DNA of 56,742 nt, the filler included, from Platydemus manokwari (taxonomy: Eukaryota): NCBI GenBank assembly GCA_037951405.1. It is 5 parts of 5 records of this genome, joined end to end, with 100 filler letters (N's around TTAATTAATTAA, not from the genome) between each part and the next. Parts side by side here need not be neighbours in the genome. Positions count along the whole stretch, not along the records: positions 14,394 to 24,313 come from JBBMOY011189212.1; 4 more parts are not named here. One strand, 5' to 3'. Position 1 is the first letter of the stretch; each line of letters begins with the position of its first letter. A program made the position numbers and the translations under genes. Positions 3,348 through 24,313 of the stretch are shown one piece after another. A model generated the notes under the pieces. That model was not told where the DNA came from and ran no database searches. It saw only the letters and a program-made list of their open reading frames with translations.

Positions 3348-6300
3348 ATGGATTTAAGGAAAGACGGTATTTAATTTCATAATTCATATTTAGCCTATGT
3401 ATAATTGATTTTTAATTTAGATACCGAACGGGCTGTTAATTTGCTTAAATTTTATAAATCTAAACTTAACAAGTCAGATGAAAAATCATTACGAAAAGCG
3501 ATGGATAAATTAATTGATACTCTCGAATCACCTTTGTTTTCTGCTTTATTGGGTTAAAATACTTTTATTTTAATATCAAAAAAGAAATATCTTTTAATTA
3601 GACATCCAAGAATTTTACGAAGTGTCTCTGTCAACAGCAATTGATGGCAATCAACCCAAAACACAACAGATTGTCGAGGAAATTCACGAGCCGGAACACG
3701 AATCTCCAACTAAAGTAAAAAAAGAACGATCGAAAAAAGTAGCGTATTTATCATCATATTTATAAATACATCGCTTTTTTCTATTTCATTATTGTTAATT
3801 TTTTTATTTTCAGTCGAGACGACATCATAAATCGGAAGAAGATGATGAACCGAATGAAATAGAAGTTCACCGTCAAACTAAAGAAAATTCACCTGGTAAG
3901 TATAATAAAATTGTTAAAGGGAATATTTAACATTGACAGTTTTAATGCGAAGTATATAGATTTATTAAAAATTATTTGTTTTCAGTACATCTTGTAATCA
4001 TAGTTCTTAATTTATTTTTAAATGACATAATAATAATAATTTAATTTCTGTTTAAAATTTCATCTTGATCTGGTTCCGTATTAAATGATAAATGCTTAAC
4101 ATGCAGTTTGGGTTCTGATAGAAAATTGAATATGATTATATAATTATTCACGGTTATGTAATTTTCTACCCGAAACAGGTCCGGTATCACCAAAACAAAC
4201 TCATCACGACTATCAAGATTCCAAACCGACACACCAGCAAGAAGAATATGCAATACAAGACGATCACGAAGATGATAGCCAAAACCCTTGGATCACCATG
4301 GAAATTAATTTGGTAAAAGGCAAAAAGGGTTATGGATTTGCCGTTGCTGGAGGTTACAACAAACCTCACTATGAAGGTCACAATGGAATATTTGTGACCA
4401 AAATAATACCGGAAGGTGCTGCCGAGGTCGATGGGCGATTAAGGTAGGTCATGAAGATCATAGCATATTTCATACAATGATATTCATGATCATGTTTTGT
4501 TTTTATAAATTATCTTTGATTTATTAGCATAATTCTATTTTTTCTTTTTGACATCGCTTGACCTTAAAATGTTGTCTATTAAAAATCGCTTTAAAAATTG
4601 AAACACATTTGCAGATTTTGGCGTTGTCCGAGATGAGATATCATTTTGGTTGCTTTGTTGGTCATTTTTGGGTGTTATTTTCTACAATTTAATCGTTTAG
4701 TTGCGCGCATCTTATTGGTTATTCTTTGATTGTGTGCTGTTTTGAAGATAGAGCATTTTCACAATCATATGGTTGGGCTTAACAATTGAAAATTATCAGC
4801 TACAATATCATTAGGAAATATTTCATTATTCTATCAAAGATTTATGTTTTTGTGATTTATTTGTTATATATTTGCTATATGTTTGTCATTTTTCTCATTC
4901 GTGAAATTTATCTTTAAATTTTCGACACGCACCAGTGAATTGCTTCATATCATTTATTTTTTAAATTATTATCCATTGTTATTTCATTACTAAAATGCTA
5001 TCTATTGTTGTTTCATTTTTTTTTAAATATTGTTTTCCAGTTTTCCCTATGATTTTTCTCGTTCTTGAAATTTATCTTTAAATTTTCGACACGCATCAAT
5101 GAATTGCTTCATATAATTTATTTGTAAATTATTACCCGTTGTTATTTCATTACTAAATTGCTATCTATTGTTGTTTCATTTGCTAAATATTGCTTTCCAC
5201 TTTTCCTTGTGATTTTTCTCGTTTCTAAAATCTATCTTTAAATTGCCGACACGCATCAATAAATTGCTTCATTCGTTATTGTTAATATATCCATTGTTGT
5301 TTTGTTGCTAAATATTGCTTTTTACTTTTCAAAAGTGAGGTTCATTGTGATTTTTCTATTTATCCTTAAATAGTCGACACGCACTAATGAATTGCCTCAT
5401 TCTTTAATGGTAAATATTTGCTCTTCACTCTTCTTTGTGATTTTTCTCGTTTGTAAAATTTATCTTTAAATTGTCGACATGCACCAATGAATTATTTCAT
5501 ATCATTTATCTTTAAATTATTATCCATTGTTATTTCATTACTAAATTGCTATCTATTTTTGTTTCATTGCTAAATATTGCTTTCCACTTATCCGTGTTAT
5601 TTTTCTCGTTTGTGAAATTTATCTCAACTATTGTCTTCAATGAATTCCCTCATTCTTTATTGGTGAATATTTGCTCTTCACTCTTTTCTGTGATTTTTCT
5701 CGCTTGTGAAATTTATTGGTAAGTGCTCGATAAACATTAATGAATTACCTCATATTCTTTATTGCTAAATTCTTATCCATTGTTGTTTCATTTGTTTAAT
5801 ATTGCATTTCACTCTTCAAAAGCTGGTTTCCTTGTGCTTTTTCTCGCTTGTGAAATTTATCTTTAAATAGTCGACACGCACTAATGAATTCCCTCATATT
5901 CTTTATTGCTAAATTATTATCCTTTATTTCTTAATTTGCTTATTATTACATTTCACTCTTCAAAAACTAGTTTCTTTGTGATTAACTCTTGTATTCGTTA
6001 TGATAAAATCATTGATTATATTCATTATGATGCTTCATTTTGTAATTAATTAGAATTGACGATGTGATTGCGTCGGTCAATGATGTCGATCTCGAATATG
6101 TAACACATGAAACTGCAGTGGAAACATTGAAAACTGCTGGCCAAAATATGACTTTGGTAATCCATGTTTAAGAATAAAACCATATTTAATTATGCAATAA
6201 TCAGATCATAAATCGTTTAAAAGACGAATATTTCGCCAACGATAATGTCCATCTTGAAGAAGCGCAACCAACTTCATCGAATGCTGGCTATTATTCACCA

Positions 6301-9300
6301 GAACATGATGCATATCAAGAAGAAACGGGTGAGGTGACAAATTTCCAACAATTTGAAATAACATTGGTTAAACGAGCGGGTGGTGGATTGGGAATTAGTA
6401 TTCAAGGAGGTTATGATCCTGATAATCATCAGGATGATTCTTACATATCAATTTCGAAATTGACTCCCGGTGGGGTGGCAGATACCGATGGACGACTTCA
6501 AGTTGGAGATTTCATTTTGCAGGTAATTGTTGAAATTTTCCAGCACCTTGACAGTTTATTAAAATTTTATATTTGATATTAATTTGAAATTAAAATTTAT
6601 ATTTTTTATCAACAATATTGATTGATTTTAATAATATTGATAAAAATAATAATTTATTCCAATCAATAAATTACATTATTGATAAATGATTGATTTTTTA
6701 CAAGGTTGATGATCAACCTCTCAATGGTGTAACACATGATGAAGCTGTTAATTTGATGAAAAACACTGGCAAACAAGTCACTTTATATGTGGGACGATTT
6801 ATTGAAAGTTAGTTTATTATTCATTATATAATATATAATGCTGTTTTTTATGTTTTTCCATTCATAAGCATCTCTAATTTATGACATTTATCATATATTG
6901 TTTACAAATTATTTTTGTATATATTATCATTATCATTACAATCAATATTTTCACAAAATCTTTTTATTGTTTTCTTTCAATTTAAAAAATTAATTTCAAA
7001 TCTAAATATAATACAAAACAATGTTGGTTAATTTCACAATCATATTAAGTTAAGTAAATCTTAGATATTTTATTTGTTAAAATATTCGAAAAAATGCGTG
7101 TTATTTTTAAAACAATAATTTTTTATGCAAACAAACGATGGTTTTACTGGCAACCACGTCGAATAAATTCTCTTACAAGAGTCAAAAGAGAAGAGAGACA
7201 AATTTTTTTGCGAATCTGCTCCAAAACACCCAGGAGTTATTGATTCCGAAATCGTAGTTCTTCGATATATCAATCCAAGATGCTGACAAATAGTTCCAGA
7301 CAACCAAGGATTTCGCCACATTTGATAAAATGAAACTGTCATTTGCATTTTGCAAGGATATAGTAGTTTCAAAAAAACTTTTTCGAATGAAGAGAGAGAA
7401 ATAGTTTATGGAAGCTTTCTAACATACCAAGATAGTGTATGACGAGGTTTTTACATAAAATCTTTTCATTGTTTTCTTTCTAGTTAAAAATCTATTTCCA
7501 TCAAATTAAAATTATTATTTTAATGTAATTTAAAATCTAATTATAATACAAAATCATATTATATTGACTATTAAAATCATCTTCAAAATCGGTAATTTTA
7601 TTAAAAAATATTTGAAATATCTGATGTGTGTTATTAACAAAATATTATTCATAAACCATCAATGTAAGCCGCTACTATTTTATTAAACACGCATCGAAAA
7701 CGAACTGAAACGACATGATATCAAATTATATATATTTAAATACAATTATATAAGCAAATTATAGGATTGGAATGAAAATCTTGTCCAATAGAAAATAATA
7801 TTTATTTAATCAAATGAAGACAATATGCGAATTGAGAAATGTAAACAAATCATTAATCGTCTGTAAATATAAACAAATTCAATATTTTATGAGGAAATAT
7901 ATAGTTTAAATCCATTTTTAAATCCTTTTGTCAATGTTAAATTTCTATCTTATAATTAAATAATTGTTTCAGATAGCTATCATTTAAAAACTTATTATTT
8001 TGTAGCATACAAAGAAGTTTAAGCGAAGTGACTTGACAAAGCTGACGTATTTTTTAAGTTTTTAAAAGTTTCATTTCCTTTACTAAGATCGGTTTTACGG
8101 TAAAAACGCATCCACCATACTTCCCAGACTTTGCCCCTTCAGATTATTACTTGTTTTCTCCTAAGAAAAACTCGCTTCAAAACCTGCGAAATTTTATGAA
8201 AACGGCATAAAACAACTCCCAGAACACTGGAAAAAGTGTGTGGGCCTTAATGGTGACTATTTTCAACATTTCAGATTTACGGACGAATGATGTTTGGTTT
8301 ATATTTCTCAATTTACATATTTTCTTTATTGGTTAAATAAATATTATTTCCTATCGGTCAAGACTTTCGTTCCAATCCTATAATATAATTTTATATAAAA
8401 TCCAATTTTATCAAATTAAATATTTAAAAATCTAATTTAACTTAATGTTCTCGCATAACTAATTAACATAAATTATTAATTTAGATTCTCCTATTTTATA
8501 TTAATATCTATTAAAAATATATTTTCTAATGTTTTATTAATTAAAACATTCATAACTAAATTTGATAGCATTGATGAAAGCAAAACAAATTATTTATTCG
8601 ACTTATATTTGATTATTTCAGTGAATCAAGATTTGGAACAGGAACCTGAAGAGCCAGTTGTGGAAAGAACTGGTGAGTAATAGAAAATATAATATATTAC
8701 TTAATTATATTGCATCTTAAAATCCAATATTGCTGTTATCAAATTTCCTAAAATAACAATTTCAATACTCTGATGTTCAATTTTGTCATCCATTTGAGCT
8801 ATTTGAGCTACTGATAGTTAAGAAGCAGCGCACTTCAGCCAAATGATAGAAATATCGATTTGTTGAAATAGAAATCTTTAGTTTATTTGATTGATATTTA
8901 TAATCAATAGTTTTGTGTATTGTTTAGATGAACATTTGTATTCAAACACATTCATTTTTTCAAATGATTTTACAATTGGTTTAAGCTCAGTTAAAATCAG
9001 ATCGATTTTGCGATAACTATTGATTATTGATGAATAAAATATAAACAATATAAATGGATGATATTATCATGAATATTTAGAGAATATTGGGATAAATTTG
9101 AAATTCATATTTCTGTAGATTTTAATCTAAAAAAAATTTCAAGTAAAAAGCAAAATATTTGTGTTCTTGATTAGTAAAACGAAAAGAAAATATTGGAAAT
9201 CAATATGATTGCATTTTGAAAAAAAATACAAAAATATTTCTGATATACAGCGAAATATGTAGCAATTAATTGCTTTCGATTATAATTAAATTAATTGATT

Positions 9301-9382
9301 GTTGGTTGTCATCATTGATATTTATTCTTGATATTCAGAAAAGAAAAAGAAAAAGAAGCATCGAAGGGATAGAGAAGAATGA
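3348..9382 (+). CDS. dlg1: Discs-large (DLG/SAP97)-like scaffold, truncated architecture L27-PDZ-PDZ-polybasic tail, 417 aa, 10 exons
   Basis: Exons 3348-3366, 3421-3552, 3602-3738, 3814-3895, 4179-4443, 6054-6156, 6205-6522, 6705-6807, 8622-8672, 9339-9382; all GT-AG, phase-consistent, 1254 nt. N-terminus MDLRKDDTERAVNLLKFYKSKLNKSDEKSLRKAMDKLIDTLESPLFSALLDIQEFYEVSL aligns with the DLG1 L27 (MPVRKQDTQRAL...LFQALIDIQEFYEVTL). PDZ1 GYGFAVAGG...IFVTKIIPEGAAEVDGRLR...VTHETAV. PDZ2 GLGISIQGG...GGVADTDGRLQVGD...VTHDEAV. Ends EKKKKKKHRRDREE*, with AATAAA about 85 nt downstream. The last two exons are less certain than the first eight. Confidence 0.88.
4885..5985 (+). repeat. Diverged intronic tandem repeat (satellite-like, units about 100-240 nt) in DLG intron 5
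   Basis: Recurring motif GATTTTTCTCG..TGTGAAATTTATCTTTAAAT.GTCGACACGCA..AATGAATT.C.TCAT at about 4890, 5050, 5210, 5350, 5440, 5600, 5690 and 5835. Confidence 0.8.
7081..7185 (+). repeat. Dispersed repeat fragment (copy 1; copy 2 at about 39151-39250)
   Basis: Shared core CTGGCAACCACG(T/C)CGAA(A)TAAAT plus collinear upstream TTTTTAAA..AATAATT..T.ATG.AAACAA at both loci. Confidence 0.6.
7762..8380 (+). mobile_element. Internally deleted mariner element with long (about 110 bp) terminal inverted repeats, in DLG intron 8
   Basis: TA-flanked. 5' TAGGATTGGAATGAAAATCTTGTCCAATAG... is the inverted copy of 3' ...CTATCGGTCAAGACTTTCGTTCCAATCCTA. Internal transposase remnants HPPYFPDFAPSDYYLF (YSPDLAP motif) and GIKQLPEHWKKCVGLNGDYFQ. 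Confidence 0.9.
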
Positions 9383-10414
9383 AAGTCGTTGAATTGAATT
9401 TTATCACCAAACTTTTATATTTCATATCATTATTGGCTGTGTAAGAAATTTTTAGAATTTTTCATAAATAAATTGATTTTTATATTGGGTTTATGTTTTT
9501 ATTATCGCTTAATTATATTTTCTTGTTTTTAATTTATTTATTCATAGTTAACGGAAAAAATTAATTTTTCAATAACTTTATTTGGAATTTATGAGATGCT
9601 TTCAAATTTTTCCAACAACTACTCGGTATTCCATTTTTAAACGATTGCCTTGTTTTGAACACCAAATAATCTCGAATTTGATTTGACCAAATAAGTATTT
9701 GATGTGGTGAAATATCGCATTTTTACAGATAAATGGGAAATCTATTTTCTTTTCGGTATAAATCTGAAAATTTGATGAATCTTTGTGAAATATAGTCAGC
9801 TAAGACATCTTATATCGTTATCAAATTAGAATTGCTTTCTTGAAGTTTTATTTATTTAACTTATCATGGATAAAGTTATCATTTCTGGAATATCTTACTA
9901 AATTTAAGATAAAATTTTTATTAAAGACTTTTTCATTTTCAAAAATATAACTTCTTATTTCTACAGATATCTTCCTCACTATAAATGAGTGAAATTTGTT
10001 TTCGCTACCAGTATTTGTTTGATATCATGACAATTATTCTAAATTTGTGCAGCAATTGCATTTCTTATTTACATCTATTCTTTATAATTGTGATTTTGTT
10101 ATCTTACCTCATATTTTTTATATATAAAAATGTCGGGGGTACATCTGGACCCATAAGAAATCTATCCAGCATATAGCCATGACTAGCCAAAATTTTTCAC
10201 CATGTCAAATGACTTGGTTTCCATCTTTTATTTATTGTAAATTTCCTTATTTATTGTCAATAACACAACTTAAAAAAACAACTTCTTACCCAGTAATGTT
10301 TCCACGATAACATATTTTATCTAAGCAAAGTAAAAAACTGAAAATTGAACTGAATAAAATTTTATTATCTAAACACACTACAATATCAAAATAAAACAAC
10401 ACAAACAAAAAACC

Positions 10415-10700
10415 CATCGTACCGGGTGATCTGTTCTAGTTCGACTAAACCGTATCGGCCGAATTCGTTGTCAATTATTTAAATCATTTTATTAAAAAAT
10501 CAATTCAATGCACTGGAGTAGAATACAAACTCCTTGATGACTCTGGAAAGTCATGATTTTACAATTATTGTACTTATTGGCCTTCTTTGATTCTGATTTT
10601 CATTTTGTACTTGATCCAAAACATTATACTTTATCGCATTGAATCGGTACTGACTGCTTAATCTTTGTGGGAAAGTTCAAATAGAAGTTCAATCTATGCG
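10415..10700 (-). mobile_element. Highly degenerate Ty3/gypsy integrase fragment
   Basis: 10420-10465 resembles 35347-35395 (GTAC..GGTGATCTGTT...TCGGCCG), the SPAEVIFGRKINRSP integrase segment. Upstream VPIQCDKV*CF resembles the integrase IHxDxG motif. Confidence 0.4.
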
Positions 10701-12699
10701 GAGTGTAGCAATATTCGAATCACTTTACAGTTGTATTTCAATACATAAATAGTATTCGATGGAGAGTGATATCTAGTAATCTTTGTTTGAAGGAATCAAT
10801 AATGAAAGGGGTACGGTTTGAATAGAGAAGGAAGAAAGTGTAATCCAACAATAACATTAGAAATTCTATTTTGACTATTCTGTCAGTGTTTAGAATTTTA
10901 TTAACTAATAGGTAATCTCATTAATTTTAAATTTTTTCTTATTTTTTCTTCAAATAAAACGAGGTTTGAATAAAAATGTTTTCGTTTACTTTGTTGTCGA
11001 TTGTTTATTTGTTGACAATGTTAGACATCACTGTCAATTAATTTATCGATTGATAATCAGTAGTCACAAATAATGGTGACGAATAACTTATTAAACATTT
11101 CGATGATTATAACGACTATTTCCTAATGAGACGGATTAGCAATGATTACTGAGAGAACCAGTAATCACAACAAGGATTATTATTAACTATTAGTGAACCT
11201 TTGAGCTATAATCGTCGAGAGCAAAAATAGTATAGAGCTAATCACATTTGTTTACATATAGTCATATTCGATAGGTATATTTTCATGATCAAAACCAACC
11301 AATACAACATGTCGTGTTTATTGTGGTATTTTGTATGACACAGAAAATTATACCGTGTACGTATTGGGTTATAATAAAATAAAATCGAAGATTTGGTGTT
11401 ACCTGAATACCTGAATGTTGAAAAATGAACAATTAAAGGTCACGATTTTAGTTCCCATAATAATTTTATCCTTTCAGAAAACAAGGTGTTCGATTATAGC
11501 ATTTATAATATTTACAATATAGCTAATCAGTGATGATTACGATTTCCTGAAAATAATGAAAGATGCAACTCTAAATTAAATTCAATAATCTGAATGATAT
11601 ATTGCGAATTAATATATGTATAATTTTCAATATTTACGAGGTACAATGTACTATTGTTGACGAATATACCCTTCAATTAAAGAATCAAGTGAGTCCAATT
11701 AAATGAAGAAGCGTTTCATATGGAAAAAATTGAAAGAGGTAGACGTAATGACTGGCAGTCTTTTCTATTTAGAACAACCACACAGCTATGGGCGCATTAT
11801 CAAAATAAAATTTAATCAACTTATCTTCTTTTTTTCTTTTGATAATTTAACTATAATGCTTAACAGTTTCTTCGAACGAAATCACGAGATTTTTGTAAAG
11901 TTAACTGCAAAATTGTGTTAAGGCACTGTTTATAGATCATTTCACTTTGATGTCACATGCCTTGTTGATGAGTAAAATTATTTTGTTAACTTTTGTATCT
12001 AATTTTAGTAACTCTTAATACTCCAGTTACTAAATTTATCAACAGTCTAGTGTTTTTACTGATGTTTGTTTTTAAACTTGGTTTTGCTATTTTAAGTAAT
12101 GATGTAGTTAATAAAAATAGATTGATTTTATTAATATCTTCATCCTTAAGATATTTTGTTGATAACCTTCAACTCACTTTTTATTGTGTTAAAACAATTT
12201 TTAGCTTTATTTAACTTAAATAATTTTGTATATACCTTTTTCATTCTGATTATTTTATTTTTTAATGTTTTAAATAAGTTTTATATTTTATCTATTTATT
12301 GTTTTTTGAGTTTTGTTTTATTTCATATATATTTACTCTCTAAATTAATATGTCACTATGTCTTTATATATTTGTATTGCAAAGAAGGTGCTTATACAAT
12401 AATTAAATAAATCTTTTATTTAATTTAAAGACATTTAATAATAAAATAATAGAAAATGAAAAAAAATAGCAAAATGAAGATATGAAAATTAGATGAGAAC
12501 GAATAACAGATAATTGTTTAAAATATATTGAAGCCATCAATCTTGTAGCCTTTTTATTATAACAGAAAAGCTACGTAACGTATGAAGTACGTCAACATCA
12601 TTTAACCCATAGAACTTCAAAAAATTTTCATACATCCTTACACATTAAAAAAAATCAGAACCGATATTAATTTCACATCTTCAGGACTGATATAAACAT

Positions 12700-13800
12700 T
12701 ATCATAAAGTATTTGGTTATAACGTGTGGGTTGCTGCGGCTTATTTTATGAGTTGCTTCTGGAGGAGCCTCAATAATTTCAAATTATGACGAAACTATCG
12801 AAAATTTACTGAAATTTAAATGTAAATTAAAGCGGATCCCAACAATATTGATCGGTTTTGGGGTCAGTCTCTTTTTTATTAATTGTATTTTATGGTTATT
12901 TTATTTTTGGTTGAGCAATATCACAGTCTTATTAGTCTCACGGAGTTCTTATAACCCCAGGTATTGATTAAATATATTGTTTTTATGATCTTTCTTTGCC
13001 TTGATCGTGTCAATCCTCGTATGAAGACGAGATGAACGGCTCAATGATATTGCTTTGGATTTTATCAATCTCAAATTATCATATTTATGGTTATTATTTG
13101 CCTCTTTACACCTTCCTAAAAAGATGGTGAATTGACAACGAAATGATTCTTTACAGATAGTGAAATGACGCTTAGGGCACTCGCCAAATTTAAAACCAAC
13201 TAGTTGACTATTATAAAACTTTATTGTTATAAAATTACAAATAAAAAATGACTACTTTTATACAATTAATGGAGTTATAAATTACTACTTTTATGTTTAA
13301 ATACAACGATACTTGTATGCACAAAACAACAAGAGTTTGGGCACAATTCGGTACAAAGCTCCATTTAACACTGCTCACAAGAGAAGTAGAACCGTTCCCA
13401 CATATACGCTTTTCATTGTAAATTATCGATGATTTTACAAGTACGATTTCTTACTCGTTTCGGGGCTTCCTATTGAACAATTAGAGTATCAATATTTATA
13501 TTGATCTACCAGATAAACTGGTCATATAATTGGCCACAGGAAAAATTGGCTTGGGCTTTGACTGTCTTCGGCAACGAATTCGAATAGTTGATTACGGGCT
13601 CACTAGTGGTTTCTAAAAATGGGGCAAGGCCTATTGATTTTAAGGGTCTATTTATATAGATTTTTATTGGGGCTGAATTTTTATTCAAATGCGGGTTCTT
13701 TTCATTTTTATTCGAACGAATTTCTTTTCAATGGTGGTTGTCATTGCATTGTATGGGTAAAAACTGGTGTTCATTATATTTTTATGAAAGGGAATTTATT
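12700..13800 (-). mobile_element. Degenerate LTR retrotransposon pol remnants
   Basis: Minus-strand fragments LPKTVKAQANFSCGQLYDQFI (RT-RNaseH connection-like) and NLASALS (NxxADALS-like) amid many stops. Confidence 0.3.
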
Positions 13801-14393: not shown

Positions 14394-15751
14394 TATATTG
14401 TTATTATCATTGTTTTTATTGGTTATTATTATTAGTTATTAATTATTATTATTATTGTTAATATTATTGTTAATATTATTATTTATTACATTTGTATAGA
14501 TTTATCATTTTAATTTATGTTTATATCTATGGTTTACTAATATAGCTGATGACTTAAATCACAAAGCAACTGATCATAAGCTACAAGATTTTGGAAGAAT
14601 TAATTTTTATCTAAAATCATTTGACATTATTATAAAATAATAATTTTTATCATTAATGATCATTATATTATTATAGATTTTTTATCATTATTAAAATCCT
14701 GATTAATATTGTAGAGTTTTGATTTATATTCTGATCGATATTGATAAATAGAAAGAACAATCAAACCTCTGTCTCTAGACGATTTGTTGAATTTAATAGA
14801 TACATTTTTTCTAGATGTAATGGGTTTTATTATTATCAATATGTTCTTAATACAGCATATTGATTATCCTATCAAAAACTACATATAAAATCACCAACGA
14901 AGTTTGATGAACGATTTTATTCAAAATGAGTGTGGAAATCCGAAGAACCACAATCGTTTTTTAAAGAAATCTGATCAGAACAGCACGTGTTCTTAAAATA
15001 AAAGCTATAGGTATGATAGGCAAGCGTTTTGTGCACCAGATTCTGAAATTAAAACAAGATTTTTGCATCTCAATCAGGATCCCCAGACTCCGATGATGAA
15101 ACAAATCAATGAATCCAAGTAAAATAAGATATGATGTTTATAACAAAAATGAATATACGATATCCTGTGGTACTATAGGTTTATGTAAGCTTTGATATTT
15201 AAATGATAGAACATGTCAAACTCGATAAATTATGTATAGAAATTTAAAACTAATATATTTTTCAATACAAAAATTCACCTCTTTACAAAATTAAATAAAT
15301 GAATTCAAAATCAATAAAAAGATTAATAAAAGTAATCAATAGTATATTCATCTTTATTATAAACATCATATATTATTTTATTTGGGTCCATTTTTTTTTG
15401 CTTTATCACTGATGTCTGGAGAATCCTGAAGGAGATGCGAAAATTGTTTTGTAATTTCGACATCTGGCACCAAAAACTGGGCTATCATTCTATTGCAACC
15501 AAATATTTCTGATTATTTTGTAATGAACAGTTAAAACTTTAAATTTGGAAAAAATGCTGTTCGGATCAAGAAAATCTCGTGTAATTCCTAGTATTTGTAG
15601 TTTGTATCTGCTATTCTTATTCCACTATTTCTGACCTCATTTTATCGGAAAGTTTCTTTAGTTTTCTATTTTTTATATTCTTCATACATTTCAATTAGAG
15701 GTGTCGAAATAATTTAATAATGCCACTTATAATTTAAATTACTCTATTCAG

Positions 15752-18700
15752 ATCTTTATATTCCATAAAGAAATCATTTTTATATGATTCTGTCGATTAC
15801 AAATCATACATCAGCAACGATTCTAACATTGATGAGACCGGTTCTTTTCATTGGGTTCCAGAAACAAATTTCGAAGAAATATGCCTAGTAAGTTGTAATA
15901 AATTTGCAGTGTTTTTCTTGAGGGTTATATTAAAATTACGAAAGTAAATTCAAAAAGTTTTTGGTGATCAAACATATTCCAGAGATCTGGATATTAAATC
16001 CTAGCCAGCTAACCTTTATTATTATTAAGATTTATCATCGTTAGTACCACAGTCCCATTCGTTATTTCGCTTTCCATATAAATCCTTTGGAATTTTACAC
16101 AGAGACAGCTATAACACAACACGATAATTCAGATAATCGATGTATGGTTATTGAACTAAGGCCATTTTGTAAATGCACTGCCGAAGTAATACAAACTCAA
16201 CATTTTCCTGTCAAATAAACAGAAAACAAAATCGCCACTTAAATCTACCACCAGAACTGAACGCATATTATTTTATCTTAACGACTAATAAAAATCAAGT
16301 ACAAAAGCGAAAACAAGAATCAATTATTGTAGATACTGATTGTAGTCAACGGTATATTATCATATAATCATTATCATTTCTTCTGATCTTTAATGATTCC
16401 ATAACGCACTAATAGTGATTTAATTTAATATTGATTTTATTGATCTAAAAAAAATCAAGATTGATTTTTATTATCATTAATGCTGTGTTTAGTATTATGA
16501 ATTTATATGTACTCCTCAGGATATCCAAGATGCAGAATCTCGAAATATTACCGATCATATTTTAGTGTGTATTTGTGGATCTGGAAATGGGACGATTGAT
16601 TTTTGCAATTTTATGATGCCTTTACGATCTCGAGCTTTGACGGGTAACAACTTGAGACAAATTGTATTTTTAGGAAATAAAAAATATTTCCTGGGACAAA
16701 AATGGCGAAACATAAAAAACTTCCCAAAGTTCCTGATAATAGATGTAAGAATGAAATTCTTCTCTTTATTTAGAAATTTTATTTTCAAATATTTCAAAGT
16801 CGTCATTATTTGATATCATTCAATTGGATTGTATCATGATACACCAACACCCAACACACTCATATTATGTGAAAAATCTGAAATAGTTAAGGCAACACAA
16901 TAACTTAAATAGCCAATCAAAATTCAGTAAAATCAAATGATATTATTGGATCCTTATTATCCATCTACATTTGTTGATTTACAGTAGAAATTGTTTTCTT
17001 CACATTGCACGTCATCTCATTTATTGTGTCTGTAAATATTGAACATTTTTCTGATACATATTTCAGTCAACTCATTCTGAATAAAGTGACAAAAAATTAA
17101 CTATTGGAATAATCTTTAAAATGTTGACGTAATACGACACACACTTTCAGCCAATAGGATACGAAAATATGAAAACTATCAAAGCATGAAATCTCTAAAC
17201 TTTATAAAGCACGCACTAAAAACGAGCAGAATAGACATAACACCAGAATTACACAATTTTTTTAAATAAATCAATATTTTATAAAAATCTGGTTTAAAAG
17301 CTTGCGAAATTTCAATTCATTATAATTCCTCGGAGAATCTGTTTCTAGTTCCTAGAGATTCATTGATCAATAGATTTTACAAAAGTTCAAAAACCATTGA
17401 GTTACCCATCATTGGTTATCAGTTACTGAATAAAATCAGATACCATGAAGTCTAATAGACTGTGATATTAATAGAATCTTGGACAAAATATATGAAAAAG
17501 TATCCGCGACAATCGGAAATCAATGCCGTTACAATTTATTTGAAGATATTTTCCGGAAACTGTTTCAATAAATTTAAATTAAATTAATTAATTAATTATT
17601 ATTTTAATTAAATAATGACTTTATTTGATGAAAATTTATGCCGTAGGGATCACCGATCCAAGCAAAAGATTTGAAATCAGCAGGATTACTCAGCTGCTTT
17701 GCATGTGTCATTTTAAATGTAAATGACAATACGGGGTCAATAACCGATAAAAATTCGATAATTTGCTCCACTCTTGTCAGATCCATGAAAAATGAACAAG
17801 ACGTGGATTTCAATATCATCACGGATATAAGTTATTTTTAATATTCTAATAATCATTACCGATATTATCACCAATAAAATATTATCATCAATATTATCAA
17901 TAAATTTGTTATTTATTAATATCTTATTTTAGATGATGATAGGTCGGCGTATCATCTCAGTTCCACTGATTCTCAGATGTATGATAGCAGCGTATCAGTG
18001 CAACATACTGAGCCATTTGCTCGGGGAATAATATTTGCAAATTCTTTTCTTTATAGCTGCATAAGTGCAGTAATTATTTTTTATATTCATTATATTCTCC
18101 ATCTGTCAATTTAATACTGAAGTATCATGACATGATAATCATGACAATAATAATAACAATAATAATAATAATAATGTTGGGTTGGTGGATAAATTCGTGC
18201 GGTTTTTTACAATAAGGAAAAATGCATACTGATCAAGAATAAAACCATGCAAAAAACCATTTCTCATCACCTATTACGATCCTGGAAAGGAAAGAATAAT
18301 GTTAATATTAATAACGAACGAGTAAATTTGCAGAAATCGAAACATGTTGATTTTTGTGACTTTCTTTGAGAAGTTGAGATAGCCATGATCCAAGCTTTCG
18401 CACTTTTCCGATTTTCTTGAGATGTCGAGAAATAGTGGTGTGATCACAATCCATATCTTGTCCAAGTGCTCGGGTCGATTGAATCATTGATTGGATCATC
18501 ATGAATCAGTTGGTTCAAACATCTTCATCAAAGGCCTGACCGAGGTGTATTGTTCGAATCAAAATTTTCAATGTTAAATTTCAAAAACCACTTTTGTGTT
18601 GTTCGTTCACTGACTGCCTTTTCTCCATAAACGCAACTAATCATTCTGGTGGCTTCTGCAGCGTTTAAATGTTGATTAAAATAGAATAGGAATAGATGTC

Positions 18701-19979
18701 GGAAATATTCATTTTTATATACCTGACACTCCATTTTAATGAGGATAATGAAAGTGAGAGTTAGTCTAAAATGATTTAATTAGATAATTCAGCTGAATGA
18801 ATAACTCAAATCAGTTGAAACAAGAAGTTTGTGTGTTTTCTGTGCAACAAATAAAACCGTACCAATTTATGCACCAACCCAATCATGATAATAATTATAA
18901 TAATAATTATTATTATTGTTATTATTATTAAAATTGTGAAGAGTTGTTTAATAGTGCACCGGATGGATTCCGTGAAGGGCTTATTTGAGTAAAGCGGTGG
19001 TTTATTCTAGTACAAAATTATAAAATGGTGGAATTGACACTCTATCAAATGATATTTATTGCAAGAAACTATCGTTGGAATAACTGCTGAAGTCAAAAAA
19101 ATATTTCATCACCGAACTCTATTATACAATACATTAATCTTTATAATAATTATTAATATTATTATTTGTATTGGTTGAAATTAGAAATATATTTTCAATA
19201 TATTTTATGACGAGATGAAAATTTCTTAGATAATTATAGTGTACAAAAATGTGGTTAAAACCCACAGATTGATATAATTCTTTGAAACAAAACCATTCCG
19301 CTATAAATTATTACCTCTAATAAATAATATGTACCTAAAAATTTCAAACGTAAGCACTTCTAAATCGCAGTTTAAATATATAACAAATTAAAACATTTCA
19401 TTTAAAAATTAAATAACGAAAAATTCATTCTAGATATCTGACAATCCGGAAATAAGTTCTTTTCTCAAAGTTCTACTAAATGGACCACAAGTAGACAGAA
19501 TTGAAACAATGTTTGGGTCTGGATTAGGTTGATTTATTATCGAGTTGAAACATAAAAATAATAGCATATTCTAAGTCAAGGATTAGCTCCTAACACAGGC
19601 AATTGTCCATTTCCCAGAGGACACGATGTTAAATGTCATCTCATACCAATCACTCAACCTCCTTTCAATTTAATTTCCAATCTATATGACGAAGTAAGAT
19701 GTGATTAACAAGACGATATTAATGAATAAATTCTATTAACAGACTTTAACATATGATATCCTGTTCAAGTGGGCTTTGATTGAAAAAAGAATTCTCTGCT
19801 TGGGTCTGTATCGATTAAACTTTTTAACTTTTGGTTATGTGTTTACACATCCTCATAAATCGACGGAAATCTATCAATCAGATCAGGTATCGATTATTTA
19901 TGAATTTTACTCTGATCTGGATTTATTGATTTTTTAGATTTATTGTTTTCGATCCACCAGATGCGATTCGGAACAATAA
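15752..19979 (+). CDS. slo: Slo/BK-family potassium channel, divergent paralogue; 3' portion (RCK1-RCK2 linker, RCK2, C-terminus), 5' exons not resolved
   Basis: Exons 15752-15887, 16520-16744, 17647-17830, 17933-18069, 19434-19527, 19581-19693, 19743-19886, 19938-19979; GT-AG, phase-consistent, about 357 aa. Motifs versus Slo1: DETGSFHWVP (DSTGMFHWCA), DHILVCICG...NFMMPLRS (GHVVVCIFG...NLVMPLRA), WRNIKNFPK, GSPIQAKDL, NIITDINDD, TEPFARG (TQPFACG), YDILFKWAL..ILCLGLYRL (YGDLFCKAL..MLCFGIYRL), YVFTHP...DQIYCF. Confidence 0.88.
18177..18882 (-). mobile_element. Internally deleted, inactivated cecropia-type mariner transposon in a slo intron
   Basis: TIRs TTGGGTTGGTGGATAAATTCGTGCGGTTTT and (reverse complement) TTGGGTTGGTGCATAAATTGGTACGGTTTT. 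Transposase pieces MECQVYKNEYFRHLFLFYFN...VYGEKAVSERTTQKWF...PRSG, TISRHLKKIGKVRKLGSW and FLSRIVIGDEKWFF, broken by stops and frameshifts; catalytic C-terminus deleted. Confidence 0.92.
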
Positions 19980-22614
19980 TATTATTATACTGATTTTAGA
20001 ATTTGTTTTAAAAATTATCTTTACTGGAAACAAAATCCTGATCTTTATTGTCATTGGTGTGTGTTATTATCAATATTATTTCCCAATAAAGACGAACTTA
20101 ATCTTTGATGTACATGAATCTTTAGCAAATATTCTATGATGAGTTTTATTTTAAAAATTACAGTTTCGATTTTATAAATTTTAATAACATATTAAAATCA
20201 TAGCTATCGTTATAAAAATTTAAAAAAAATTATTATTAATTTTTATTAATTTTTATAATTATTATCGTTAAGATTTTGGTGAATTTTATATTTTATCAAA
20301 GCTCCATTTAAAATATTAGTTGGATTTGCTAAAAAACCAAAGACTTGATAAATACATCGACGGTAGTCTTTATATATTTAGCTAGGAACGAATGCTCTAA
20401 ATATCGGTATTAGCTCTTTAGAGATTCACTCAATGCGAGTAATATTTATGAGGAATATGATACTGTGAAACCAAAAAGCAATTCCAATAAGTATCATTGC
20501 AAATGTGAATCAAATGAGCATCAATTATTGGAATTTATTAAAGAGTAAATTACTTAATGATCGACAGGCTAAGAACCTGGTATATCTTTGAACTACGAAT
20601 TGTGATCATCAATGATTGAATAACCAAATCTTCGCAATTTTAAAGGCTTAGTTAATAGAAAAGCATATTAAAAAAAAATTAATTTTGAACTGAAATACAT
20701 TTAATGATTGGTGTTTATGAAATCAATTTTAAATTATTGAATGATATAAACAAAACCTGACGGTGAATTAATGAGATTTCGAGTTCTGATATGAAATCGT
20801 CTTTATCAGAATCAGAATATAATTATCAATTTTCAACGATTATCAATTCATTCGATCCTAAAGATAATTTGCAAATTAATTTATTAAGTTAAATTCATCT
20901 ATATTTTCATTGCTTTTAATGTGCTTTGATATTTGATTTGTAATTCTAAAATTAATATTAATCTTCTNNNNNNNNNNTGATAAAATATTTGATTTTTGTA
21001 AACAATTTAATTTCTACACATGCAGCTATCTACTAAAAGAAAAATGAAATGATAAAATTATTAATTGTGACGAAATTATCAAAGATATTAAATATAGGAA
21101 CTATAGTGCTGGAGATAGATCTATTGTGGTCCTCAGCACAATTGGTAGATCAATATTTCAACTAAATTCCGTTAATTTTACCTTAAATAAAATAAAAGTA
21201 AAACATAAATTGAACAATATTCCTCCATCGTTCAAAAGCTTATCAATAATTAACTCATCGAAAACCAAGGTGTTTCATTTTGAACTCTGCAACATTTATT
21301 CAAAAATCTAAATTAATTTTTAAATAGAATTCAGCACTGATTTATTATCAATGAAATGTTTTGTTTCTCTTGCCGCTATTTATGAGATCAATTTTCTTTT
21401 TGTATTGAAATAGTATTTTGAAATTGTTGAAAATAGCATCGATCGATTGTGATCCAAGGTTAATAAATTCAGTGCTCATGCAGCAAAGGAAAAAATATGC
21501 GCGAAGCTAATGCAAACACATTAAAGCATGTCTAACTCCAAATTAATCAGAATTGTGGTCTAAATTAATACCGAAACTTGGTGAATTAGAGATGTTTAGT
21601 ATTAACTTTGAAACTTTACTATAAAAATGAGATAAATTTAAAACATTTTGTTTAAAAAATTTTAATTTTATTAAATTTTTAGCATGTTTTCCTAAAATTT
21701 GTTACAAAAATTTCTATTAAAAATTTTCATACTGGAGGAATATTAAATGGATTAATTATTATTCATTATTCGCGTTGTAAATGCCTTTGTTCCATTGATA
21801 AATTAAACAATTTTGACTGGTTGACGGGGCCAAAGTTGATAACCGAAGCTTGGGATGCAGTTGTAAGATCTTTAATAATCGTATAAATAATTGTTCCAGC
21901 ATTACCCATTTTTAATGAAATATTACGAATACATCAAATGTTTATTTTAGCTTTATCTTGTTATTATTGGCTCTAAGATTGCCAAACTTCAGTTTTCGAT
22001 TTTAGCTTAAAAATTTTTTGGTATGAACTTCATGGCAAATTAATATTTTAGGTATAATCGATATTTGAGGTAAAATAATACATGTAACACTAACACAAAC
22101 AATCAATAACATTGCTTATCTTAATAAAAAATACTTATTTCGTTTTCTTTCAACTTCGGACAATGCACATAACTGGTATTAAATCAGACTGGAACCAAAT
22201 AACTCGGTGATAACCACATGAAATTTATCCGGACAATGTTTTGATGTTAAGCATGGTAAAGTATAAAATGAACATCCAATTAACAGATACGTAATTACAT
22301 TAATTTGAATTCTTAACATAGTTGTGAATATCGATGGGGATCAACACTAACCTAGAGAAATATTAGTTCCTCACTATTCCACCAATAGAATATTTTCAAA
22401 TACATTTTTAGCTCTCCATCATCACACAAATATTGCCTTAATTTAATGATGTAATCACTTAACAAATCATCACATAATAAAATGGTTTGAAATTAAAGAA
22501 AATTTAAGAATATCCCGGAGAGCTTTAAGTGTTTAAACGCTAAAATTCACTTCAATGCAGTAACGAATAAATTATGTTCTCAATTGATTTAAACTATCAT
22601 CACAATTGTTTATT

Positions 22615-22710
22615 TATTTAATTTTATATCTCTAATTATATTTTATATATTTATATTTATATCTCTATTTATATTTTATATCTCTAATTTTATATCTCTA
22701 TATCTATACC
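22615..22710. repeat. Low-complexity TTTTATATCTCTA-type repeat
   Basis: Several imperfect copies of TTTTATATCTCTA and TTTATAT. Confidence 0.6.
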
Positions 22711-24134
22711 TTTGATTTTCCATTCTTTTTCTATGTTTTCGAGATGCATCAATCAGACAGAAATACAAAATAATTTGATCTCTTCTTGAAAATTATATGT
22801 AAAGTAAAAATCAAAATAAAATAAATTAAAAATTTAATAATATCTCGTCAGTTATTTATATAAATCTCAACACATTCGATATTTTCTGGATTTGGTTTTA
22901 GTAAAAATTCGGATTTAAATAACTGCTTTCAGCTATATTTGACTTATTTTCCCGGAATTTCAGTTAAAAATGTTATCATATATCAATAACAACAACTTAT
23001 TCGAAAAAAGGTCGAATTAACATTTATCGAGTGCTCCATTCAAGCGAAAATCTATTTAAGCAAACTAATTTTCACATCTTTTAGTATTTCTCAATTGTCT
23101 TTCGATTATTTCAGAAATCTCATACTTCGATATTGAACTCACAAGTTACTATATATTTCTTAGCGTAAATTGGATCTTCTCAATGACCTTGAATATTTGA
23201 TTCTAATAAATAAAATTATGATATTTTATAATTAAAAAATATTTGTTGTCGAAATCCATAGCATATCAATAACATTAGGTGATCGAGATTTCATTTCACC
23301 TCGATCTAGAATGATTGATGTCGACCAAAATGCAAAACTATGCATATATTAACAATGTCAATAACCACAAAACCCTATCGTATAAAAGATGAAAATAATC
23401 TGTGGAATGACCAGATAGTATTTCATTAGATTTTGTCATTTTAATTATAATATTATTCATAATTTTTTTTTATGTTGGGTTTCTGTATGTCTCTCGATAC
23501 TCGAGAATCTCCGATATATGCTGTTGCAGTAATCCAATAGATAGATTAATCGATAATTTAATATTATTTGAGTTTAAAAACTCAAATCATGATTTTAGGA
23601 TTTTTTATTCATGAACCTTTACACAAAGCTTTCAACTTCTCAGTAATCAATTTAAGTTAAACACAGCAACATGTTTGACCTCTTGCTTTCCAAAAAATTG
23701 CTCTCATGCCACCAGTACAATACTTTAATTTAAAAATTTATTCCTGTCGATTTGAAAAATAATTTTAATAATAATTAAACTGTTAATTTTAAAATGTATT
23801 CAAATTACGATATTTTCATTGGAATTAATTTACCCAATTGATTTCAAAATAAACTGTAGAAAATCAATACAATTTAAAAATATCCAGTCAGTCCAAATGA
23901 TTCAATTGAAGAACGTGTATGTTGACGTTTTGGTGACACTTAGTCTTTTATATGAATTATCTATTAATTAAAATTTTAATTTAATCTAATTCGAGTTGTA
24001 AACAGAATGTGATTTTTCGAAATTTTGATGAAGTATCTGTTAATATATTTGAAATTTTTGGACATATATATGTATATAGTTCTTATTGCATTTCATTTTA
24101 TTTTTATAAAATCAATACTGTTCTAAATAAAAAC

Positions 24135-24218
24135 AATAATATTTTAATAAAATCAATAATATTTTAATAAAATCAATAATATTTTAATAAAATCAATAAT
24201 ATTTTAATAAAATCAATA
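24135..24218. repeat. 20-nt minisatellite (AATAATATTTTAATAAAATC) x about 4
   Basis: Directly visible perfect tandem copies. Confidence 0.9.
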
Positions 24219-24240
24219 CGAAGGTAAGATTATTTATCTA

Positions 24241-24313
24241 CCAGGTTGAGTCAAAAGTTATTCATGTTTTTATGCAGGTATTTTATTAACACAAATTGTT
24301 ATAACGCTGAACA
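24241..24313. mobile_element. Probable Tc1/mariner terminus truncated by spacer
   Basis: TA-CCAGGTTGAGTCAAAAGTT start resembles mariner TIRs; contig ends inside it. Confidence 0.4.

Follow-up and report, generated by a model that had tools for sequence, protein, structure and literature searches.

We report a gene of the BK (big-conductance K+, Slo1) channel family in which the calcium bowl, a Ca2+-binding element of the gating ring, has been lost. The gene lies in a stretch of 56,742 nucleotides from the flatworm Platydemus manokwari (assembly GCA_037951405.1; hereafter the window), where the piece at positions 14394-24313 (9.9 kb, record JBBMOY011189212.1) was analysed. Only the half of the gene encoding RCK2, the second RCK (regulator of K+ conductance) domain, is inside this piece, and the membrane part and RCK1 are upstream of it. 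Exon 4 (17933-18069), which stands at the position of the bowl, is a true protein-coding exon, and the BK/Slo1-family K+ channel gene to which it belongs is fast-evolving and very divergent. Our preferred reading, to which we assign a probability of about 0.75, is that this Slo1-family gene kept the RCK2 fold while its bowl was replaced, that its gating ring would bind no Ca2+ at this site, and that the channel would probably show little or no activation by micromolar Ca2+.

Two aspartate side chains, those of D895 and D897, and two backbone carbonyls bind Ca2+ in the bowl of Slo1. Residue numbers (D895, D897, E535 and D367) refer to human Slo1 and were transferred to our alignments. Together, the last base of exon 3 (17830) and exon 4 encode NIITDI-N-DD RSAYHLSSTDSQMYDSSVSVQH TEPFARG IIFANSFLYSCISA, up to the GT donor at 18070. 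The loop, (N)DDRSAYHLSSTDSQMYDSSVSVQH, ends at 18006 and is followed by TEPFARG at 18007-18027. It reads HLSSTDSQMYDSS, with Ser and Met at the two ligand positions when aligned (HMMER and MAFFT) through P0001, the closest relative that we found. The HMMER alignment of P0001, carried over without gaps, gives the replacements relative to Slo1 as D892 to S, D895 to S and D897 to M. The loop has 25 residues against 23 in Slo1 and is Ser/Thr-rich and uncharged in place of the Asp-rich bowl; its 12-residue core holds two acidic residues, against seven in Slo1. The Slo1 bowl segment of molluscs, insects, a nematode and echinoderms has the Asp run and ends in (L/M)TQPFACG. The predicted correspondence between exon 4 and the bowl rests on collinearity, on the flanks (IITDI for IITEL, TEPFARG for TQPFACG) and on P0001. 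We also scanned the six frames of 14394-24313 for an acid-rich alternative exon (at least 6 acidic residues in 10, or at least 5 Asp per open stretch) and found none, which argues that no alternative bowl exon exists within the 9.9-kb piece.

These results agree with several claims of an initial annotation of this DNA. The sequence that it gave for 17933-18069, between NIITDINDD and TEPFARG, reads as claimed and is exactly exon 4, and the Slo1 bowl that it quoted for this position matches the Slo1 proteins of the animals just listed. Its central proposal, that the calcium bowl is lost, holds: Ser and Met occupy the ligand positions and the Asp run is absent. The DQDDDDD-type alternative exon that, by its own account, would have refuted it does not occur in the six frames of the piece. 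It had also stated that eight exons splice in frame without stops, and we recovered this chain with AG/GT borders and fitting phases, in a frame that is conserved in a second species, that of P0001.

The chain is on the plus strand at 15752-19979, has an open frame and covers the RCK2 part of a Slo channel. Its exons are as follows.

Exon 1, 15752-15887, plus strand: region where the RCK1-RCK2 linker ends and RCK2 begins, with the motif IDETGSFHW (DSTGMFHW in Slo1); AG acceptor and GT donor.
Exon 2, 16520-16744, plus strand: first half of the RCK2 Rossmann core (HILVCICGSG...FMMPLRSR...NFPKF), matching positions 2-61 of PF22614.
Exon 3, 17647-17830, plus strand: second half of the RCK2 core, ending in NIITDI and the first base of an Asn codon, matching positions 63-114 of PF22614.
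Exon 4, 17933-18069, plus strand: loop at the bowl position, TEPFARG, then the next helix; AG acceptor and GT donor, the latter at 18070.
Exon 5, 19434-19527, plus strand: ISDNPEISSFLKVLLNGPQVDRIETMFGSGL plus one base; AG acceptor and GT donor, fitting phase, weak collinear similarity to Slo1.
Exon 6, 19581-19693, plus strand: variable RCK2 segment LAPNTGNCPFPRGHDVKCHLIPITQPPFNLISNLYDE; AG acceptor and GT donor.
Exon 7, 19743-19886, plus strand: C-terminal subdomain of RCK2, ILCLGLYRL...YVFTHP (LCFGIYRL...RYVITNPP in Slo1).
Exon 8, 19938-19979, plus strand: final strand and stop codon, IYCFRSTRCDSEQ*; AG acceptor, joined to exon 7 in phase 0.

All eight exons have AG acceptors and all seven internal donors are GT; the phases are compatible and there are zero internal stops. 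Two codons are split, A|AT (Asn) between exons 3 and 4 and G|GA (Gly) between exons 5 and 6. The piece has 27% G+C (19-35% per 500-base window), and the background on the same strand has one stop per 13 codons on average, so open stretches of 45-106 codons, as found along the exon chain, are not expected by chance. Short introns of 49-102 nt stand beside longer ones. The 5' border of exon 1 is the least certain of the model. Exon 1 begins in codon phase 2, which implies earlier exons upstream of the piece; the N-terminal part of P0001 had no tblastn match in 14394-15751. The evidence for exons 5, 6 and 8 consists of frame logic and weak similarity. For example, reading through the donor of exon 5 reaches a stop at 19530, and the acceptor of exon 6 is the sole choice that keeps the frame, an alternative AG at 19574-75 leading to a stop.

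The family assignment comes from searches in which the exons were used one by one. Exons 2 and 3 match the Pfam family Slo-like_RCK (PF22614) above its cut-off (8.9e-11 and 1.2e-07), and exon 7 just misses that of Slowpoke_C (PF21014; 22.7 bits against a cut-off of 24.2 bits, E 1.1e-04) and matches Necator Slo1 (tblastn, 5.8e-05). Among all PDB chains, exon 2 retrieves human Slo3 (7.5e-09) and many Slo1 structures (around 1e-07), while the best match of exon 3 is Slo1 (E 0.011). Taken singly, exons 4 and 5 gave either nothing in PDB or a chance match to a designed repeat protein; such short exons carry too little signal. The Pfam and PDB matches place the RCK2 half of a Slo1/Slo3-type channel in the piece. 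Exon-by-exon scores against a set of 28 reference Slo proteins failed to tell the families apart, with the exception of P0001: the exons are far nearer to it than to any other reference, and we therefore used P0001 as the proxy for the gene in trees.

These searches also bear on the reading that the gene encodes a Slo2-type (Na+/Cl--activated) channel in which a bowl was never present and nothing was lost. It is textbook knowledge that Slo2 channels have two RCK domains and no Asp run. However, no Slo2 (KCNT) chain was among the PDB matches of exons 2 and 3, and none appeared up to E = 10 for the exons or for P0001, which matches Slo1 and Slo3 at 1e-19 to 1e-21 (Slo1 3.7e-21, Slo3 3.3e-19). 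The similarity of exon 7 to Slowpoke_C points the same way. This comparison is PDB-based, the tree described below being built without Slo2 sequences, and it makes a Slo2 origin very improbable.

P0001 was found with a HMMER search of exon 2 against 1.84 billion representative proteins. The search gave 163 matches at E <= 0.001, a single one of which, P0001, was below 1e-10. This protein of 340 residues has a UniParc number only. It is collinear with exons 1-4, with 34, 70, 49 and 49% identity, respectively; the figure for exon 1 comes from 44 residues aligned by tblastn, where Necator Slo1 matches too, and that for exon 4 from 43 residues. At the bowl position P0001 has REDEVACHFSSVEAFDIDNKMPVQH, which has the length of the Platydemus loop, aligns with it without gaps and likewise contains no Asp run. 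The two loops are identical at nine of 25 positions, and the shared residues include two His, Ser-Ser, one Asp and VQH. HMMER aligns the P0001 loop onto the bowl in a solved structure of a zebrafish BK gating ring. When P0001 was the query of a word search, this retrieved only P0001 itself and P0152, a fragment of 225 residues covering the RCK1 end of a relative, which has Leu at the position of E535. A conserved core with a less conserved loop is the pattern expected of a selected gene whose loop lost its role as a bowl.

The same comparison informs the possibility that the gene is a duplicate on its way to becoming a pseudogene, decaying or not expressed, and that its odd loop is simply relaxed sequence. 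Its very long branch, the lack of an RNA run containing the locus among those found, and the loop being the least conserved part relative to P0001 would fit such a history. So would a second variant of exon 2 and a cluster of differences in sequencing run X1 (DNA contigs, 543 Mb, ~16x; see below), which make several copies possible. Against this stand the eight open exons with canonical splice sites in a background so rich in stops, the residues that the loop has in common with P0001, and the distribution of identity, which reaches 70% in the RCK core and drops in the loops, as is typical under purifying selection. We regard decay as an improbable explanation.

We placed the gene in a maximum-likelihood tree of 29 proteins (358 columns, LG+C20) with P0001 standing for it. 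P0001 was placed as sister of a second Slo-like paralogue of trematodes (four members), with an ultrafast bootstrap (UFBoot) of 97 and a Shimodaira-Hasegawa-like approximate likelihood ratio test (SH-aLRT) of 96, at a node where two long branches meet. The main BK proteins of flatworms form their own clade (100/100) with P0001 outside it, and this clade is the sister of the group holding P0001 (84/91). When the second paralogue was removed, P0001 stayed in the same poorly resolved neighbourhood beside the flatworm BK clade. Several characters are in line with the tree: Ser replaces the Asp of FLD, and P0152, P0001 and the second paralogue all have one extra residue inserted where RCK1 ends. 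The C-terminal ends agree as well, being YCF in the Platydemus gene, VYCF or VYCL in the second paralogue and FCL elsewhere. Of the characters of the second paralogue, the absence of the bowl and the YCF end are found in the Platydemus gene itself, and the loss of E535 in its relative P0152 only.

P0001 is also outside the vertebrate Slo3 clade. Forcing it in with five Slo3-type rows cost 16.5 log-likelihood units and was marginally rejected by the approximately unbiased (AU) test (p 0.044). The proposal that the gene is Slo1-derived and independent of Slo3 is thus upheld: the PDB matches of the exons and of P0001 put it on the Slo1/Slo3 branch rather than with Slo2, and its position outside vertebrate Slo3 implies that any Slo3 likeness arose separately. 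Calling the channel lineage-specific was too narrow, since P0001 groups with a bowl-less paralogue of Schistosoma, Paragonimus and Calicophoron, and the bowl of the main flatworm BK is degenerate too; this gene is probably not alone in the loss, which is likely to be old. Since the closest clade has no bowl either, the bowl was probably lost before this species arose. That the gene is functional and its ligand gating altered, as the annotation further proposed, is an inference.

The second paralogue (P0305-P0311 and P0175) was found in Calicophoron and, by a search with the Calicophoron protein, as orthologues in Paragonimus and four Schistosoma species. All its members resemble the Platydemus gene in lacking the Asp run and in having Ser for the Asp of FLD, although the loop of the latter is longer than in the Schistosoma members. 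They keep D367 and have R, G or K at E535, where P0152 is likewise non-acidic. Overall identity to P0001 is about 26%. The entries carry automatic names only, and we found no description of these proteins, or of a second, bowl-less flatworm Slo lineage, in the open-access literature that we searched. In P0306, P0307, P0305 and P0175 the pore motif is TVGYGD and the S4 segment keeps one of the three Slo1 arginines (GFLYFARL against GLRFLRALRL), which suggests altered voltage sensing in this paralogue.

The tree and these characters also address an alternative, namely that we are looking at the only, ordinary Slo1 orthologue of this organism, drifted in the way of the main BK of parasitic flatworms. 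The latter (Echinococcus, Taenia, Spirometra, Fasciola, Clonorchis and Schistosoma) does resemble the Platydemus gene in its degenerate bowl: cestode and trematode orthologues (P0202, P0059, P0192, P0193, P0144 and P0189) have no canonical Asp run and read LDPDHSGG in Schistosoma and LDPEDFETG in cestodes. Yet these proteins retain E535, which P0152 has lost, together with the S4 arginines and the long insertions; P0001 joins the second paralogue and not their clade, which has its full support (100/100) without P0001; and exon 2 has no more than 31-48% of its residues in common with any Slo1. A sole, drifted Slo1 is therefore, in our view, unlikely. As a separate matter, the degenerate bowls of the main BK hint that Neodermata as a whole may have a weakened bowl-based Ca2+ sensing.

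Among the longer matches of the exon 2 search, it is not rare for Slo1-like proteins to have a poor bowl or none. For example, two 'slowpoke-like' proteins of the tardigrade Paramacrobiotus (P0049 and P0116) have no Asp bowl, and the nemertean Tubulanus (P0067) has a partial one, DQDDDTE. Judging from such cases, the bowl seems to have eroded several times in invertebrate copies of Slo1.

Compared with known channels, the architecture of RCK2 is that of Slo1 (BK, slowpoke, KCNMA1), with motifs in the same order: DSTGMFHW-like, HVVVC, MPLRAS-like, IITEL, TQPFACG-like, GIYRL and RYVITNPP-like. The Platydemus gene differs from Slo1 in having no Asp bowl and only a very short loop from the RCK2 core to IITEL, and in a protein that terminates directly after RCK2. 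Slo3 (KCNU1) is a vertebrate sperm channel gated by pH and voltage. It resembles our gene in being derived from Slo1, in lacking the Asp bowl and in having a PDB score near that of Slo1; it also has K at E535, a residue replaced in the relatives of the Platydemus gene as well. The difference is the position of P0001 outside the Slo3 clade. Slo3 arose in early vertebrates as a duplicate of Slo1 without the bowl, and in C. elegans, Drosophila and non-vertebrate deuterostomes only Slo1 was found (PMC5337896). A 2014 study of nematode Slo-1 described a single slo-1 gene in almost every animal and named teleosts and trichocephalid nematodes as the groups that deviate (PMC4270693).

These observations would fit together as follows. 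The conservation of the RCK2 fold around the loop predicts that the protein should still form a gating ring. Since the bowl ligands are gone, binding of Ca2+ at the RCK2/RCK1 interface would be very unlikely. E535 is also lost in P0152 and in the trematode second paralogue and, combined with the loss of the bowl, this predicts a channel that is probably activated little or not at all by micromolar Ca2+. Gating could then depend on voltage or another cytosolic factor, or the protein could act as a modifying subunit in mixed tetramers with the main BK subunit.

A number of points weigh against this reading. The argument on RCK1 draws on relatives, one of which is the 225-residue fragment, the pore, S4 and RCK1 of the gene itself being outside the piece. 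The loop retains two Asp, and in P0001 a D-x-D pair stands one residue off register; with these residues the loop may still bind cations weakly. In addition, neutralising the bowl alone in Slo1 lowers Ca2+ sensitivity without abolishing it. Exon 4 alone has zero matches in PDB and Pfam, and none of exons 4, 5, 6 and 8 has a significant match individually. The placement of P0001 joins two long branches and was flagged as a possibly false grouping, and P0001 is equally distant from all other Slo proteins (22-29%). Finally, no RNA run holding the locus was found, the sole run that contains it (X1) being DNA-like, with introns and exons covered alike.

A broader interpretation would assign the Platydemus gene, evolving very fast in a genome of about half a gigabase or more, to a second Slo lineage that extends across flatworms and has lost both high-affinity Ca2+ sites. 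The Platydemus gene itself shows the missing bowl, its relatives show the missing E535, and the trematode members have in addition lost two of the three S4 arginines. Such a lineage would parallel Slo3 independently among invertebrates, as a big-conductance K+ channel that came to respond to some signal in place of Ca2+. We put this forward tentatively and consider it doubtful.

BK channels are the classic example of a channel integrating voltage with Ca2+ signals. To our knowledge, Slo3 is the sole BK copy studied so far that traded Ca2+ for another signal. If the loss proposed here is real, an invertebrate lineage that lost its Ca2+ sites independently would offer a natural experiment in re-tuning a gating ring. 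It would also be relevant in parasitic flatworms to the use of Slo channels as drug targets; nematode SLO-1 is the target of emodepside (PMC4270693). The weight of the finding is limited by the presence of similar proteins already deposited under automatic names and by only half of the gene being in the piece. The gene is a very divergent addition to a known channel family, of which bowl-less flatworm copies are already deposited and uncharacterised.

The 3' end of the gene can be read in two ways. The last intron (19887-19937, 51 nt) is open in frame, and its retention would give the C-terminus VSIIYEFYSDLDLLIF*, with a stop at 19935-19937. This end (VSIIYEF...) also resembles the final strand of Slo1 (VFVLMQF), while the YCF ending of exon 8 resembles the C-terminal VYCF/VYCL of the trematode second paralogue. 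On these resemblances, both the spliced end in exon 8 and the unspliced end are possible. A reading in frame +1 at 19939-20004 (RFIVFDPPDA...) as the RYVITNPP motif was rejected, the phase being unsuitable and the motif being already present as YVFTHP in exon 7. Further downstream, the open stretches at 20414-24164 have no Pfam match, and a run of 10 N at about 20967-20976 corresponds to an assembly gap or a mask.

The contigs of run X1 are letter-for-letter identical to exon 4. A second contig of this run (425 nt, depth 9) matches exon 2 from its acceptor (16518) to 16624 with six differences, and is unlike the intron of the window upstream of the acceptor. Two of the changes in this contig, T to S and D to N, give residues found in P0001. 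Over 16640-16651, an X1 contig differs from the window at five bases (T to A, N to D and one silent change). These differences may reflect a divergent haplotype, or the gene may have a second copy of recent origin.

A mariner-type element with an internal deletion, about 706 bp long, lies on the minus strand (18177-18882) within the intron that separates exons 4 and 5. Its 30-nt terminal inverted repeats (18177-18206 and 18853-18882) are 90% complementary, and remnants of the helix-turn-helix of a Mos1-type transposase (PF17906, 9.2e-16) lie at 18528-18734. The depth of this element in the X1 DNA contigs is 5,000-13,000, compared with about 16 in the flanks, which indicates several hundred copies in the genome.

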